Shown one piece after another: positions 1,866 to 8,431 of a stretch of 64,000 bases of DNA. The DNA lies in the sequence record OR836606.1, one strand, 5' to 3'. The notes below the pieces were generated by a model that worked only from the letters and a program-made list of their open reading frames with translations, searched no databases and had not been told where the DNA came from. Positions within the stretch are counted from its first letter, which is position 1. The number at the start of each line of letters is the position of its first letter. The position numbers were made by a program, and so were the translations under genes.

Positions 1866-3815
1866 TTAAAATACAAAAATTATATTTCCACAGTCATAAA
1901 TTTTGTTTTTATCATTTTCATCCTTTCTTTTTTGTCTTATATAGTTATTCTTTCGATTCCCGTTATTCTTTGAAAAGTTACAGAAATCAGGTTCTGTTTC
2001 CGCTATTGGCAGCATATCATAGCTTTTCATTTTATATGCTACATACGAATCTCTTTTAACTATAAATTTTAAATTTTTGTATTTTCTATTAATTAATTCT
2101 AAATCAAATTTATTATTTGTCATGGTATGATAATTATGACATTTTCTTGTTTCCTTATTATAAGAGAATACTGAAATTAATCTATTCTTATAAATTACTC
2201 CTTTATATTCTGTGTCTCCTGTAACAAATTCTTGTCTAGAATTTTCAAAAAATTCTCTAAATTTATAATAACTAATTGTATCTATTTTTATTGAATTAGT
2301 GTCTATGTCTTCAATATCAAATCTTTTATCAAACATCATTAATTCAGATAAAAATCTACCAAATTTATCCCAGCCAATTCCTTTACTCTTATTAGGAATT
2401 TCATCATCATATATATTCAGTAAATGATAACCTTTATTTTCTAGCATTTTTAATTTTCTTAATTGATGGTATTTATTTGAAGCCTCTGATCTTGTTTCAG
2501 ATGAATGGTATTTGATACCTTGAACTTCAATAGCTAATTTTAAATTTTCTATAACTATATCAATGCCATAAGGTTTGATTAAATCTTCTATTTCATAATT
2601 ATTAACTTCAAAATCTAAACTTTGAATATACTCCCTTACAAAAGTTTCTGTTATCGAGGTACTAGTAGAAGAACATTTAGGACATTGTCTACCTTTAATT
2701 AATAAATCTTCAGCTGTTACTTTAAAAGGTCCATGCTTAAGACAAATTACTTCTTGTTTTTCTTTGATAGTCTTAGGTCTGAATTTATCAATTTTATATT
2801 TATTTTTACCATGTTTACGATCAGTTAATTTTTTATAAAAGTCCTGTCTTTCATTTTCTGTATAGATATTTTTATTTATATATTTAATCTTTCTACTTAA
2901 ATTAGTATTATTATCTTCTATTATTTGATCAACGGTCTTTTTATTTAATTTAGGTTTAATAATTTCCTTTGGTTTTTCAGCTTCTTTATTTTCTTCAATT
3001 TTACCTTTATCCAGTGATTTAATATTCTTTAAGAATTTCTTATTTTCTTTTTCAGAATTAGGTATCTTATCTGGTTCTATATAATACTTTAATTTAGGGG
3101 GATTTAAAACTTCATCTAAAAGTCTTTTATTTTCTTCATTTACGTCTACTTTTTCTTTAGTTTTTTTATTTTCTTTTTCCTTCTCTTCTTTTAATTCTTG
3201 ATATATTTTTTCATTTTTATTTTCTATGAATTTATCTTTCCAACTAGTGTCTTTCTTTTCTTCTTCTGTTTCTTTTTCGCATACAGGGCAACCTTTTTTC
3301 TTTATAAAGAAATCTATTGGAGTAGTAAAGAATGGACCATGCTTTCTACATATAACTTTTTGGTTGGATCTAATTGTTGATGGTTTAAAATGACTCATAT
3401 CATATATTATACTATTATAAGTAAAATTAGCAAAATTTTTGTAAAAGAATTCAATATTTTCTTTACTTTCTTTTTTGCATTCTCTAACTTTTACTTTTAA
3501 TTTGGTAGTACTATCTATATACTTATAGATATTTCTAAGATCTTCATCTAAACCTAACTCATCTAAATTAAAAATTTTAGATTTTTTAATATTTAATTCT
3601 TCTTCCTCTTTCTTAAAGTCTTTATCTAATTTTTTAATGTCTTTAGTGTATTTTAATGTCTTTATTTTATATTCTTTTGTAATATCACTAGCATCTTTAG
3701 TTACCATAATTGTATCCTTATTTAAATCATAATCTTTCTTAAAGTCTTCTAATAAAAATATATAATTATAGCCAAACTTTTCATTTAATGATTTCCTAAT
3801 TTTTGAACCTAACAT
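1866..3815 (-). CDS. Free-standing Hef-like homing endonuclease (CxKHGxF..CPxC Zn-finger repeats plus C-terminal PD-(D/E)XK/Vsr-like domain)
   Basis: Two C(R/L)KHGPF...CPxC repeats; GIDIVIENLKLAIEVQGIKYHS nuclease motif; C-terminal IYDCG motif shared with 4599-6782. Confidence 0.7.
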   Translation of the reverse strand: MLGSKIRKSLNEKFGYNYIFLLEDFKKDYDLNKDTIMVTKDASDITKEYKIKTLKYTKDIKKLDKDFKKEEEELNIKKSKIFNLDELGLDEDLRNIYKYIDSTTKLKVKVRECKKESKENIEFFYKNFANFTYNSIIYDMSHFKPSTIRSNQKVICRKHGPFFTTPIDFFIKKKGCPVCEKETEEEKKDTSWKDKFIENKNEKIYQELKEEKEKENKKTKEKVDVNEENKRLLDEVLNPPKLKYYIEPDKIPNSEKENKKFLKNIKSLDKGKIEENKEAEKPKEIIKPKLNKKTVDQIIEDNNTNLSRKIKYINKNIYTENERQDFYKKLTDRKHGKNKYKIDKFRPKTIKEKQEVICLKHGPFKVTAEDLLIKGRQCPKCSSTSTSITETFVREYIQSLDFEVNNYEIEDLIKPYGIDIVIENLKLAIEVQGIKYHSSETRSEASNKYHQLRKLKMLENKGYHLLNIYDDEIPNKSKGIGWDKFGRFLSELMMFDKRFDIEDIDTNSIKIDTISYYKFREFFENSRQEFVTGDTEYKGVIYKNRLISVFSYNKETRKCHNYHTMTNNKFDLELINRKYKNLKFIVKRDSYVAYKMKSYDMLPIAETEPDFCNFSKNNGNRKNNYIRQKRKDENDKNKIYDCGNIIFVF

Positions 3816-3901
3816 ATCTTTTTCAACTCCATATTATAAAAGTATTTGAGATAAATTATATCTCATTTTTATAATATATATTTAAATCTATGTATAAAAT
3901 A

Positions 3902-3932
3902 ACCCTAACCTTCAATTTAATGAGGTTAGGGT
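3902..3932. terminator. Hairpin of the CCCTAACC family
   Basis: ACCCTAACCT / AGGTTAGGGT stem. Confidence 0.75.
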
Positions 3933-3959
3933 AAAAGTGCTTTATTAGTTTTTAGCCGA

Positions 3960-4400
3960 TCAAAAAAGCATAAAATGATCCACCTAGTTTTTCTTTTAAG
4001 TTGTGAATTAAAAGAAATAAAATATTTAATAGTCTAGTTTTTTAATATTAGGGTCAAAACTAGAAAACAAATTAAGTTAAAGTTAGTCAATTATTAAAAG
4101 ACCTCTTTAACAAAAATAAAATCTAATAACTAAACGTAAATTAGATATAAGCTTTAATTTTACAACTGACGATATGCCTTAACGACAGTTGAATCTAACA
4201 GCATAAGTATGGCATATGACTCATACTGTGTTTCATTTACACTAAGTCTGCAGCCTTAGTGTGAGGATGATTAATCCTATCAGTTTGTTCTTGGTGAGAG
4301 TTGAACTCACAAAATATCGATTTGTTCGATATGCTTTAACCAGTAGCAACAAGAACATAATAAATAAAGTGGATCATTTTTCTATGATCCACTTAAATAA
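3960..4400 (+). ncRNA. Candidate large structured non-coding RNA, family unknown
   Basis: ORF-free, with many adjacent stems, a 12-bp long-range pairing (3973-3984 with 4369-4380) and a possible kissing loop. Strand inferred only from G-U pairs. Confidence 0.5.
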
Positions 4401-4563
4401 AGCGCAACATTATACGGGTCGGAGGCTCATGTAAATCACTTGACGTAGAGCAAATTACATGATTGAATGAGAAAAAGAATTTACGAATATAGTAAATAGA
4501 AATATATCTATTACTATATTAAAATAGTTATTTATAAATCCTAAATAAAAAAAAAAAATAATT

Positions 4564-4597
4564 ATAATACAGTGACAAATTAATGTCACTGTATTAT
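4564..4597 (-). terminator. Intrinsic terminator after 4599-6782
   Basis: 14-bp stem ATAATACAGTGACA / TGTCACTGTATTAT followed by a long U-tract on the minus strand. Confidence 0.8.
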
Positions 4598-4598
4598 A

Positions 4599-6782
4599 TT
4601 AATAAATCATAATAGTTCTACCGCAATCATAAATTCTATTAGGATTATTAGGATCTTTCTTTTCAAGTCTTTTGCTTCGATATTTAACTTTTCCTTTAGT
4701 TCGGAAATTTCTATAATCTGGCGATTCTTCTTCAATACTAACGAATCCATATTCTTTAAATTTATATTTGTTATAAGAATCAGATCTTAAATTAAAAATA
4801 ATATTTGGATATTGATTTAAAATTAAATCAATATCTGCATTGGTCCTATAATTAGTGCAATAATTATTAGATATACCTTTATTATTATAAGAAAATACAG
4901 ATATTAAAGTGTTTTTATAAAAAATTCCTTTATAAAATTTATCTTCTTTATTAAAGAAATCTAAAGAGTGATTTTTATAAAATTCTTTTATTTGTGTATA
5001 ACTTATTTTTCTTATTTCTAAATTATTTTCTATTTCTTTATCAATATTAAGATTTTTATCACCAAACAATAGAATTTCTTTTAAGATTTTACTATATTGA
5101 TTTTTTATATGCTCATACTTGTTAAAGAATTGATCTTCATATAGATTTATTAATTTATAACCTTTATTTTCCATTATATCCATTTTTTCTTTTTGATGCG
5201 TTTTTGCGTAATGTTCATCTTTAATCATATTTGAATGCCATCTTAATCCATTTACTTCAATACCCAAACCAATATCTTCTATAAAAATATCTATTTCTTT
5301 TCTATTACCTAGTATTAATCTATTAGAAATTTTAATATTTTGATACAGAGTATATTTTTTGATAATATTAAATAGAGTATCTTCTAAACTTGAAGGACCC
5401 GCAAATTTACATTTAGGACAACCTCCTCCTTTTATAATATTCTCTACTCTAGATTCAAAATAACCATGTTTTTTACATCCAAATATTGATACAGCTTTAT
5501 CATAATCATATTGAAAATTGAATTTATCTAAAATTAGTTGATCTTTTCTTTTATAACGTATCTTATATTTATAAAATTCATTTTTCTGTTTTTGATTGAA
5601 TTGTATTTTTGCTATCATTCCTTTTTCTCTATTATTTAAGTTCTTATCTTTAAATAACTCAAAAGGTGTATACTTTTTAAAATTGGTTTTAATGCTTATT
5701 AAAGGAATGTCTTTTTTATTTAGAGGTTTTCCTGTAAAATTTCCTGCTTTTTCTCTTTTAATAGCCGCAGTTTTTTCTAAAGCACATTTTCTACAACCAT
5801 AACCATTTGAATGAGATCTTAAAGATGTTCGAACTCTACCATGTTTTTTACATTTTATAATTACATGATCTTTATTAAAATTATTAAATCTTAATTCACT
5901 ATAATCATATTTATTGTTATGGATATAACTTAATTTCATTTTCATAAATTCATTTTTTTCATCAATATTAAATTTTATATAATTCTTACGAAAATCTTTA
6001 TCGCCTTTTTTCCATTTTTTAAACAAAGATTCTGGAGTTTCTTTTTTACTAATAGATGCATTTCTTTTTATTTTTTCTTTAACACAATCAGGACAGCTTT
6101 CATTATTTCTTTTAGAATAGTGGTTTACTGCTATTATTTCAAATTTTCTGTTGTGTTTTTTACATCTTAATTTTAACCTACAATGCCTTCCTGTATATAC
6201 TGCTTCAGAATAATCATATTTCTTTTCATATTCTGGGTGTCTTTTAAAAACATTTTTTAAAAATTGTTCTTTCGTTAAAATTTTATTTTTACTATCTCTT
6301 TCTTTTTGACATTTAGGACAATCTACAAATCTTAATAAATGATTACTTATACTTCTTTTGAAGGTGCCATGTTTTTCACATTTTATTTCTATATAGGTCG
6401 ATTTATTATAACGTTTATCTAAGTCTAAATTAGGATAAGTAAATTTATCACCATATATCTCTTTAAATTTAGATAAAAATTCTCTTCCAGTTAGATAATG
6501 TTTTTCTTCATAACATTTAACACATCTTTTAGCACATTTAGCATTGCCCCATAAATCAAAATATTTCTCATGTCCTTTTTCACATGTATATTTTATTCTT
6601 AAATCTTTTTTCTTCATCCCTTTACTATAATTCAATATCTCTATACTACCACCATAAGCATTAAGTAATTTACTCATACTTTTTTCTATATCTTTTTTAG
6701 TAAATGTAACCATTATCCTTTTCATCTCCGTTAAATTTATTTTTATAATTATGAATGTATATTTTAAATTAATACATAACAA
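4599..6782 (-). CDS. Free-standing Hef-like homing endonuclease with about six Zn-finger repeats (true start probably 6713 or 6725)
   Basis: Repeated CxKHG.F...GCPxC units; KEIDIFIEDIGLGIEVNGLRWHS nuclease motif; terminal RIYDCG. Confidence 0.7.
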   Translation of the reverse strand: MLCINLKYTFIIIKINLTEMKRIMVTFTKKDIEKSMSKLLNAYGGSIEILNYSKGMKKKDLRIKYTCEKGHEKYFDLWGNAKCAKRCVKCYEEKHYLTGREFLSKFKEIYGDKFTYPNLDLDKRYNKSTYIEIKCEKHGTFKRSISNHLLRFVDCPKCQKERDSKNKILTKEQFLKNVFKRHPEYEKKYDYSEAVYTGRHCRLKLRCKKHNRKFEIIAVNHYSKRNNESCPDCVKEKIKRNASISKKETPESLFKKWKKGDKDFRKNYIKFNIDEKNEFMKMKLSYIHNNKYDYSELRFNNFNKDHVIIKCKKHGRVRTSLRSHSNGYGCRKCALEKTAAIKREKAGNFTGKPLNKKDIPLISIKTNFKKYTPFELFKDKNLNNREKGMIAKIQFNQKQKNEFYKYKIRYKRKDQLILDKFNFQYDYDKAVSIFGCKKHGYFESRVENIIKGGGCPKCKFAGPSSLEDTLFNIIKKYTLYQNIKISNRLILGNRKEIDIFIEDIGLGIEVNGLRWHSNMIKDEHYAKTHQKEKMDIMENKGYKLINLYEDQFFNKYEHIKNQYSKILKEILLFGDKNLNIDKEIENNLEIRKISYTQIKEFYKNHSLDFFNKEDKFYKGIFYKNTLISVFSYNNKGISNNYCTNYRTNADIDLILNQYPNIIFNLRSDSYNKYKFKEYGFVSIEEESPDYRNFRTKGKVKYRSKRLEKKDPNNPNRIYDCGRTIMIY

Positions 6783-6873: not shown

Positions 6874-8431
6874 TTATTCTATATAACTTTCTATATCTAC
6901 TTCATTTTGTTTAATTGTCATGTCATGGAAAGATTTCATTGAGCTTGTTACAATAGCTTGAGCCACTTGGTTGACCAGTAGACCAATATTCTCAATTCCT
7001 AATTTATAAGGTAATTCTCCCGCACATTTACTACAAATATCTTCATTAGCACAATACATAGGACTTCTAAACTCTAATACTTTACCCATATAATCATCAA
7101 CATTTTCAGGAGTTAACAAAATTAATTGACCCGATCTCGCATTGTTATCTTTGAAATATCTATACATCATTAATGATGCGTTTGACTTGTCTAATGTCAA
7201 TTTAAGAAAATGATTCGTTCTACAATCCGAACCTTTTTTATCTAAAACTGTTGTTTGAAAGGCTGACATCAATTGCTTGGCTTGATCTAATTTAATTTTT
7301 CTGTATTAGTACAATACAGATAAGACTATATCTTCTAATGTAATATATTTAGTCGTTGAACAACTTGTATTAAGTTGATGCTGATTAATCTAATAAGATA
7401 CTTCCAGCAATTAATATTATTTAATGTGAGCATCAAGTTTACCCACCTTCTTGAGTCATTTATGTTAACTATATTAAAATAATACAGATCAGACTATATC
7501 AAAAACTCTATATGAGCTTAATTATATTTAGTCGTTGAACACTATTTTTAGTGATGCTGATTAACTTAATAAAGGATCTCAGCAATTAATAATTTTTCGT
7601 ATATTATATTACTATAATAAAGGGCATTCATATACCTAGTGCACGTCCAGCTGAACCAGCAGTCATGACATCTCCAAACATATAAAGTTCATTAGGATCA
7701 ATTCCTTCAGCTAGTGAGCTTTTAGCAATTCTAATTTTACTTGGATCAGCAAAGTTTTTATTGGCTCCACGAATCAATGCAGTTAATTTATAGTTATTAC
7801 CGAATGAACCACGTGAACCACTATCATAAATATCTAAATCGGCTAAACCTTTTAATTCTTCTTTACTTAATTTAATTAATTCTTTTTCAATAGCAGATAT
7901 TGCGTTTAATTCTTCTCCAGAAGTATTCAACTCTTTTTCATATTTAACTAATAATTCTTCTTTCTTTTGTTTAACCTTATCAGTAGCAGTCATCATTGTA
8001 GTAGTTAAACTAGAATTAATAAAACTAGCTATAGAGAATCCTAACCATTGTAATTTATCAATGTAATCTGACATTTCTTGTGTAGTAATAATATCATTGA
8101 GTAATAAGTTTGATAAATCAGATTGAAGCTTACCAATTCCAGAACCACCCATATCGTGATTCATATATCCTATAATTGGCCCAATTTTATTATCTAAAAT
8201 AAATTTATTAAATATATATCTACCTACAGTAGTCTTTTCATCTTTTTTATTATAAACTAAATCTTTTTTTAATGTAAATTTATCTGATGGATTATACATT
8301 GGTTCTGTATTCTGTCTAAAGGCAAATAATTCTTTTAACTTGTCTAATGTAATATCATCTTTACCAACACTTAATAATGTAGATACTTCTTTTTCGTTAA
8401 GTGTTTTATTCTCATAATTCATATTAGCCAA
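6874..8431 (-). CDS. rpoC: RNA polymerase beta-prime C-terminal subunit (probably virion RNAP), spliced, 408 aa
   Basis: Exons 8431-7634, 7456-7441 and 7286-6874 total 1227 nt and are in frame. Junctions read AGRALG|TQEGGY|QAKQLMSAFQ (bridge-helix-like region). FRSPMYC...ICSKC Zn motif. Confidence 0.9.
7287..7440 (-). ncRNA. In1: mini group I intron, 154 nt
   Basis: P1 GUGGGU/GCUCAC with U-G at the 5' splice site; core AAUUGCUG..AAUCAGC..UUCAACGACUA..AAGAUAUAGUC; terminal G. Confidence 0.9.
7457..7633 (-). ncRNA. In2: mini group I intron, 177 nt
   Basis: Junction GGT|ACTCAAG; P1 GGU/GCC; P2 with GUAA tetraloop; same core motifs; ends AAAUG. Confidence 0.9.

Follow-up and report, generated by a model that had tools for sequence, protein, structure and literature searches.

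The question raised by this locus is what is encoded by 441 nt of DNA (positions 3960-4400) that are rich in potential hairpins and lie between two endonuclease-like genes. An initial annotation, made from the letters of the DNA, had read the region as a large structured RNA, either of the ROOL/GOLLD class or new, and had speculated that it could act in trans as a helper for minimal introns. The window, i.e., the whole stretch of 64,000 nt that was analyzed, comes from Staphylococcus phage LY01 (OR836606.1, 100% identity), an AR9/PBS1-like jumbo phage with a genome of 259 kb. As the overall best explanation, we propose that the minus strand carries a non-coding RNA unit that is the remnant of a phage tRNA operon and is still organized like one, and we assign a probability of about 0.6 to this reading. 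That a structured RNA gene is present on the minus strand we regard as highly probable.

The gap between the genes spans 3816-4598 and is flanked by two minus-strand ORFs, at 1866-3815 (649 aa) and 4599-6782 (727 aa). Both are paralogues related to Hef-like homing endonucleases, so that describing them as flanking endonuclease genes was fair. The same intergenic region is found in nine further Staphylococcus jumbo phages, namely PALS_2, S6, MarsHill, Madawaska, UFV_DC4, SA1, AH12, Machias, and PB50. The upstream 727-aa ORF is present in LY01, PALS_2, and S6 and missing from MarsHill, Madawaska, SA1, and Machias, in which the gene for a virion RNA polymerase subunit adjoins the RNA locus upstream. 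Since the upstream neighbor differs among relatives, the RNA locus is not tied to the endonuclease genes. The neighboring 649-aa protein falls to 37-47% identity between clades. The region had been called free of ORFs, which is nearly correct: a mechanical 57-aa frame with a GTG start exists on the plus strand (4261-4434), but no frame is common to the relatives.

The 441-nt region folds better than shuffled sequences on either strand (z = -5.8 for the minus strand and -5.4 for the plus strand), and 0 of 100 shuffles reached an equal value. All six stem pairs listed in the initial annotation, and its two complementary 7-mers, were found in the sequence:

4163-4168 / 4186-4191: stem CAACTG/CAGTTG
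4206-4211 / 4222-4227: stem AGTATG/CATACT
4239-4246 / 4255-4262: stem ACACTAAG/CTTAGTGT
around 4286-4357: stem TGTTCTTG/CAAGAACA, enclosing GTGAG/CTCAC and ATATCGA/TCGATAT
4172-4178 / 4211-4217: complementary 7-mers ATATGCC/GGCATAT

The collection of homologues and the covariation analysis that had been recommended were run, and the fold proved to be kept in the relatives by compensating changes. Conservation extends to five of the six stems. The exception is AGTATG/CATACT, which is lost in PALS_2 (CACTCT), S6, UFV_DC4, and others; a 10-bp helix (4229-4220 / 4207-4198) is formed instead. The long-range contact that had been suggested between AAAATGATCCAC and 4369-4380 can form in LY01, with AAAATGATCCAC located at 3972-3983, one base off the 3973-3984 given before, but it is confined to the LY01 clade. 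We reject it as a closing helix because the partner is missing in SA1, AH12, Machias, and PB50 and because a competing pseudoknot stem, described below, covaries.

What the initial annotation had missed is that the acceptor-like stem and the two hairpins enclosed by it form a tRNA-type cloverleaf, and that all of these elements are on the minus strand. In this fold, TGTTCTTG/CAAGAACA is the acceptor stem, GTGAG/CTCAC the T arm, and ATATCGA/TCGATAT the anticodon arm. The relevant features are:

4286..4356, minus strand: tRNA-like cloverleaf, 71 nt (MFE fold, covariation)
4279..4285, minus strand: spacer of 7 nt between the tRNA-like element and the module described below (6-7 nt in 10/10 phages)
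3561-3633 (locus sequence L001, PALS_2), 1061-1133 (L004, S6), and 990-1062 (L006, Madawaska): complete tRNA-Asn(GTT) gene

The cloverleaf (4356-4286) appears in the minus-strand MFE fold and comprises an acceptor stem of 7 bp, a D stem of 3 bp, an anticodon stem of 7 bp with a 5-nt loop, and a T arm with the loop TTCAACT, and it has A as the discriminator. Across eight phages, 98.3% of the alignment cells are paired, compared with 31-44% in slid controls, and eight pairs have changed on both sides; this covariation keeps the acceptor, D, and T stems. An antisense-tRNA model of Rfam, Plastid-ycf2, matches the plus strand at 4285-4356 with 36 bits at a relaxed threshold. The reverse complement of its consensus takes a tRNA form, which we take to be plastid trnI-CAU, and the match therefore means that the minus strand is tRNA-shaped.

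The orthologous elements of SA1, AH12, and Machias score 51, 60, and 55 bits, respectively, above the Rfam tRNA gathering cut-off of 29 bits. The LY01 element has the four arms of a tRNA, yet it is not called by ARAGORN, has no Rfam tRNA match at E <= 10, and holds no readable anticodon. With canonical tRNAs it shares the cloverleaf, a T loop of the UUCAA type, the discriminator base, and a position in a tRNA operon; it differs from them in the 7-bp anticodon stem with a 5-nt loop, which is typical of the LY01 clade, and in the lack of A14. When the anticodon arm is read as 5 bp with a 7-nt loop, position 33 is an A instead of U33. The loop has 8 nt in SA1, 16 nt in AH12, and 34 nt in Machias and PB50. 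As the anticodon arm is thus spoiled, and in a different way in each clade, the element is no decoding tRNA. Besides, no tRNA gene was found in the whole 259-kb genome of LY01, and without a functional tRNA in this phage the tRNA shape is not kept for decoding.

The surroundings of the element point to a tRNA operon. In PALS_2, S6, and Madawaska, the tRNA-Asn(GTT) gene lies directly 5' of the tRNA-like element on the same strand, and it is cleanly missing from LY01, MarsHill, and UFV_DC4, exactly at the 5' border of the element (4356/4357). The orthologue of the LY01 element in UFV_DC4 has been listed as a pseudo-tRNA (Leu) at 72,405-72,475 (PMC10638138).

Downstream of the cloverleaf, we identified a compact module of four hairpins:

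4158..4278, minus strand: four-hairpin module, 121 nt (alignment, RNAalifold)
4278-4264, minus strand: H1, wholly invariant, holding the palindrome GAUUAAUC
4262-4239, minus strand: H2, 8 bp with the invariant loop GCUGCAGA, followed by an A-rich linker
4229-4198, minus strand: H3, 10 bp with a 12-nt loop, followed by the linker UUAGAU
4191-4163, minus strand: H4, 9 bp with an 11-nt loop, followed by the tail UAAAA
4211..4217, minus strand: AUAUGCC of the H3 loop, complementary to the H4 loop (loop-loop pairing), invariant except for A to G in SA1
4172..4178, minus strand: GGCAUAU of the H4 loop, partner of the preceding 7-mer, invariant in 10/10 phages

The module measures 121 nt without any indel in nine phages and 122 nt in SA1 (alignment A2), and its identity between clades is 76-79%. 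RNAalifold and manual reading agree on the four helices. In the alignment, 97.7% of the cells are paired compared with 25-40% in slid controls, and 15 pairs have changed on both sides compared with 0-2 in these controls. Covariation backs three of the four hairpins, H1 being invariant. Variable columns make up 32 of the 64 stem columns versus 10 of the 44 unpaired ones. The strand is indicated by G-U pairs, which occur at five pairs of the module (columns 58-75 are G-U in six of nine sequences); on the plus strand they would be A-C mismatches, which argues for a minus-strand RNA.

The loops of H3 and H4 are complementary over 7 nt, for which our own arithmetic gives a chance expectation of about 0.002 between two loops of 11-12 nt. 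The A to G change of SA1 retains the pairing as G-U, and the flanking loop bases are variable. Palindromes are present in the invariant stretches (CUGCAG within the H2 loop GCUGCAGA and GAUUAAUC in H1), and a third one, CAUAUG, lies in the H3 loop of LY01. The 5' and 3' ends of the module do not pair with each other. A small conserved peptide was considered for a 6-codon frame in H3 (ATG CCA ... TAG) and rejected, since this frame follows the changes of the stem and lacks a ribosome-binding site; no longer reading frame in the region is common to the relatives.

Between the module and the end of the unit, segments have been gained and lost among the relatives, and three elements recur, i.e., hairpin H5, the pseudoknot stem, and the terminator:

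4121..4146, minus strand: hairpin ATCTAAT/ATTAGAT, in some relatives only (LY01 clade except Madawaska, Machias, PB50; not AH12, SA1, Madawaska)
4033..4064, minus strand: hairpin H5 with the 9-bp stem TCTAGTTTT/AAAACTAGA, found in 10/10 phages, stem invariant, loop length variable
3990..4017, minus strand: 10-bp hairpin TTTCTTTTAA/TTAAAAGAAA, in the LY01 clade and SA1, absent from the AH12 clade
3938..3980, minus strand: proposed 3' H-type pseudoknot (covariation of stem 1)
3893..3932, minus strand: intrinsic terminator with a 10-bp G+C-rich stem, an 11-nt loop, and a U tract (sequence; conserved in all relatives)

Despite its varying length, the loop of H5 contains a (C/U)CCU motif in all ten phages. 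Staphylococcal regulatory RNAs have C-rich seed loops, which this motif resembles. Stem 1 of the pseudoknot consists of 5 bp (3980-3976 / 3962-3958), four of which have changed on both sides (GATCA/TGATC, GACCA/TGGTC, ATCCT/AGGAT). Its conserved 13-nt loop can pair with a downstream invariant AAAGCA to give an H-type pseudoknot; this stem 2 (3970-3965 / 3943-3938) is invariant in all relatives, and the third loop is A-rich. As the stem of H5 is invariant too, covariation is uninformative for it, and for the same reason it cannot test H1, the kissing 7-mers, or pseudoknot stem 2.

The region had been described as bounded by terminators, and this agrees with the minus-strand sites at 4598-4563 and 4394-4367, both detected by the terminator scan, and at 3932-3893, which was recognized in the sequence, the scan having missed it because of its 11-nt loop. 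Together with the nearest promoter, the boundaries are:

4563..4598, minus strand: terminator of the upstream 727-aa ORF, boundary (terminator scan)
4357..4394, minus strand: leader hairpin GTGGATCAT/ATGATCCAC with a U tract, terminator-like (terminator scan), directly 5' of the tRNA-like element
3870..3879, minus strand: AR9-type early promoter core ATATATTATA of the next gene, boundary of the unit (motif search)

Only the LY01 clade has this leader hairpin; its place is taken by another hairpin in the AH12 clade and by the terminator of the upstream gene in UFV_DC4. The core ATATATTATA is identical to annotated early promoters of AR9 and fits the early promoter consensus TATATTAT reported by Korn et al. 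Upstream of the unit, a motif search over all clades found neither an AR9-type early core TATATTAT nor a conserved late motif AACA(N6)TW. In UFV_DC4, the tRNA-like element begins 12 nt after the terminator of the upstream gene, a gap too short to hold a separate promoter. Since there is no AR9-type early promoter between the upstream terminator and the unit, the RNA is probably produced by read-through or from an unrecognized promoter.

Contigs from two oligo-dT RNA-seq metatranscriptomes of one tick study, which give neither strand nor exact ends, are about 90% identical to the window and together cover 3927-4330 only, in pieces of 3927-4013 and 3984-4330 (or 3984-4280). Neither the flanking genes nor 3816-3926 are covered, although the latter stretch hardly varies among the relatives. 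As a uniform DNA contaminant would not stop at 3927, the contigs suggest a discrete and relatively abundant RNA with its 3' border at the minus-strand terminator, though these contigs of a single study are also compatible with a DNA source. They may derive from more than one transcript.

The Rfam search that had been recommended was run and returned no family match. At the gathering score, nothing was found in the window or in the whole LY01 genome, group I and group II intron models included, and at E <= 10 over 3700-4700 only the antisense-tRNA model and chance matches of the miRNA type appeared; the ROOL and GOLLD models had no match at this threshold over the same range. A search with a model of the module (R1) gave a single copy in each of the genomes of LY01, SA1, AH12, Machias, and Madawaska and none in the Bacillus phages BpSp and AR9 or the Listeria phage LPJP1, where the best E-values were 0.06-0.1. 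Exact-pattern scans of IMG/VR gave no match, a pattern scan of metagenomes yielded one true partial PALS_2-like contig (L030) and two chance matches, and a pattern scan of bacterial genomes yielded two chance matches only. The carriers are ten genomes, one metagenome contig, and the tick contigs, and they amount to about three clades with few independent changes. No description of this RNA was found in literature searches. Overall, it is a new RNA family with a narrow distribution and of a known kind, i.e., phage RNAs linked to tRNA genes. The initial reading as a large, structured, and new RNA is thus upheld by strong covariation, by the lack of an Rfam match, and by the extent of the unit, whose conserved modules reach from 4356 to the terminator ending at 3893 and whose RNA-library contigs cover 3927-4330; its assignment to the ROOL/GOLLD class is not upheld.

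The comparison with known systems makes this clearer. ROOL and GOLLD are RNAs of phages that are encoded close to tRNA islands and assemble via kissing loops (PMC12286853). The LY01 RNA resembles them in being encoded by a phage beside tRNA genes and in having multiple hairpins, pseudoknots, and conserved loop-loop contacts; ROOL and GOLLD have been described as lacking a known function (PMC12286853). On the other hand, there is no sequence or profile similarity, and the LY01 RNA is smaller, with a core of 121 nt and at most about 460 nt in total; it is joined directly to a tRNA-like element that has degenerated, and it is known from one clade of Staphylococcus jumbo phages only. Of the cages formed by ROOL and GOLLD, it exhibits the sequence-level prerequisites alone, namely complementary and palindromic invariant loops. 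The pRNA of phage phi29 has about 120 nt and two complementary hairpin loops, with a complementary stretch of 4 nt. The module shares this size and the two mutually complementary loops, but it has no profile match and no helix closing the 5' and 3' ends, its carrier is a jumbo myovirus and thus a phage of another type than phi29, and its complementarity extends over 7 nt. A divergent member of ROOL, GOLLD, or the pRNA could be suspected from the phage origin, the adjacent tRNA-type element, and the set of hairpins, pseudoknot-type contacts, and complementary loops, yet it is extremely unlikely considering that no Rfam model matches, that the LY01 RNA is of another size (about 390-460 nt) and architecture, and that a pRNA-like closing helix is missing. 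The bacterial Y RNA YrlA is a larger non-coding RNA with a tRNA-like domain that does not decode (PMC4201824), and in this respect the LY01 RNA is similar. It differs in that its cloverleaf is contiguous and located at the 5' end, and in having no Rfam match. The Y-RNA reading was ruled out by the missing Ro60 gene: no Ro60/TROVE gene was detected in LY01, SA1, or AH12, and the control genomes were positive.

The region could also be a decaying tRNA cluster without function, its hairpins being leftovers of dead tRNA genes. The tRNAs of these phages have been read as degenerating (Korn et al.), the orthologue in UFV_DC4 is listed as a pseudo-tRNA (PMC10638138), tRNA-Asn is present or absent depending on the relative, and the anticodon arms vary by clade. 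Such a decay would hardly preserve 23 pairs of the cloverleaf and the module by compensating changes, nor a module length fixed at 121 nt with nearly invariant loops beside a neighbor protein that drops to 37-47% identity; moreover, the module has neither a tRNA shape nor an Rfam tRNA score. We therefore consider this reading very improbable. We grade in the same way the idea that the element acts as DNA, whether as an origin, as a packaging site, or through palindromes bound by a protein, and the idea that the plus strand yields a product, e.g., from the 57-aa frame. The palindromes CTGCAG, GATTAATC, and CATATG in the module, the good folding of the plus strand, and an annotated 36-aa CDS of MarsHill at the region would fit these options, but the G-U pairs suit one strand only, covariation keeps the hairpins and not the flanks of the palindromes, the RNA-library contigs match the borders of the unit, and no plus-strand frame is conserved, the tRNA-Asn insertion even breaking it. 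The proposed trans-acting helper for small phage introns found no support. It draws on the fact that LY01 genes are split and yet no Rfam group I or II intron model reaches the gathering score, so that the introns must be unusual. Nevertheless, the RNA has no resemblance to an intron core, with nothing like that of group I, and its locus is in a tRNA operon and not near introns. In AR9, the introns and the mature mRNA sequences have been determined experimentally (Korn et al.); the introns of this phage lie in the same gene set and are reported to be spliced, yet R1 found no module in it, which makes a helper role scarcely credible.

A trans-acting regulator or decoy is a less remote possibility, although we still regard it as unlikely. 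Its loops would pair with mRNAs of the host or the phage, or the tRNA-like part together with the module would sequester a host protein, for which a tRNA-modifying or tRNA-processing enzyme, a tRNA-cleaving defense nuclease, a ribosomal protein, or an RNase are candidates. The loops are more conserved than the stems, the H5 loop with its (C/U)CCU is similar to the seed loops of staphylococcal small RNAs, and the tRNA shape has been kept without a usable anticodon in a phage without functional tRNA. Against this, no partner gene travels with the locus, and the flanking genes differ among relatives. We judge a regulatory or decoy role to be about as likely as self-association, the mode of action that we tentatively put forward by analogy.

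In the preferred reading, that of an RNA unit derived from a tRNA operon, transcription would enter from upstream and run through the tRNA-shaped element, 6-7 nt of spacer, the 121-nt module, further hairpins, and the 3' pseudoknot to the terminator. The tRNA-like element may serve as a processing handle for host RNase P and RNase Z, through which the RNA would be cut from a longer transcript and stabilized; we give this role an even chance. The released product would be a stable structured RNA of about 390-460 nt that might act through its invariant loops, i.e., GCUGCAGA with its CUGCAG, the palindromic GAUUAAUC in H1, and the AUAUGCC/GGCAUAU pair. Since ROOL and GOLLD, the closest RNAs by context, assemble via kissing loops, RNA-RNA contacts are favored here as well, and these could be formed within one molecule or between copies, as in ROOL and GOLLD. 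A more specific and rather doubtful version is a small natural self-assembling RNA, in which the H3 loop of one copy would pair head to tail with the H4 loop of another, CUGCAG and GAUUAAUC would add two-fold contacts, and the resulting rings or cages would display the tRNA-shaped handle. Two points count against the unit as a whole. It could consist of several small RNAs, because the segments between its modules are gained and lost among relatives. The covarying pseudoknot stem and the contig coverage of 3927-4330, on the other hand, favor one longer unit. Besides, a terminator-like hairpin lies directly 5' of the tRNA-like element, and no promoter was found upstream of it.

Structured RNAs of phages adjacent to tRNA genes are an open problem, and ROOL and GOLLD have recently been found to form cages made of RNA only. 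The LY01 locus adds a further example, unrelated to these two and much smaller, with a delimited 121-nt core that is backed by covariation. It also presents a tRNA-like element whose shape is retained even though decoding was lost in three different ways, which corrects the published reading of merely decaying pseudo-tRNAs in AR9-like Staphylococcus phages. The S. aureus host and the phages (PALS_2, S6, MarsHill, and others) are culturable. If self-assembly were true, phages of a clinically relevant host would carry a third solution, much smaller than ROOL and GOLLD and independent of them.

Some further observations were made around the locus. Several genes of LY01 are split, e.g., that of a virion RNA polymerase subunit (window positions 6874-7272 and 7628-8431). 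Downstream of the orthologous RNA polymerase gene, Listeria phage LPJP1 has a gap of 865 nt without genes (L021 5138-6002), in which neither a tRNA nor an R1 match was found. Some 350 nt upstream, a second gene with a tRNA shape is found in AH12, Machias, and PB50 (L008 2499-2570 in AH12; 2163-2234 in both L009 and L010), and its anticodon arm is shrunken to the stem ATGAT/ATCAT with a 4-nt loop. ARAGORN assigns a 2-base 'anticodon' to it, and its Rfam tRNA score is 45.8 bits in AH12 and Machias.

Finally, conservation within the LY01 clade is seen for a segment of about 150 nt on the minus strand (window positions 4400-4545), which UFV_DC4 and SA1 lack. It contains the motif GCCTCC-N5-6-CGTATAAT, which recurs in AH12, Machias, and PB50 and which reads on the plus strand as GGAGG, four bases, ATG, and TAA (start-stop). 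The 3' end of this segment is the terminator-like hairpin at 4367-4394 with its U tract, and the segment may represent a small RNA in its own right, in which CCUCC is exposed.
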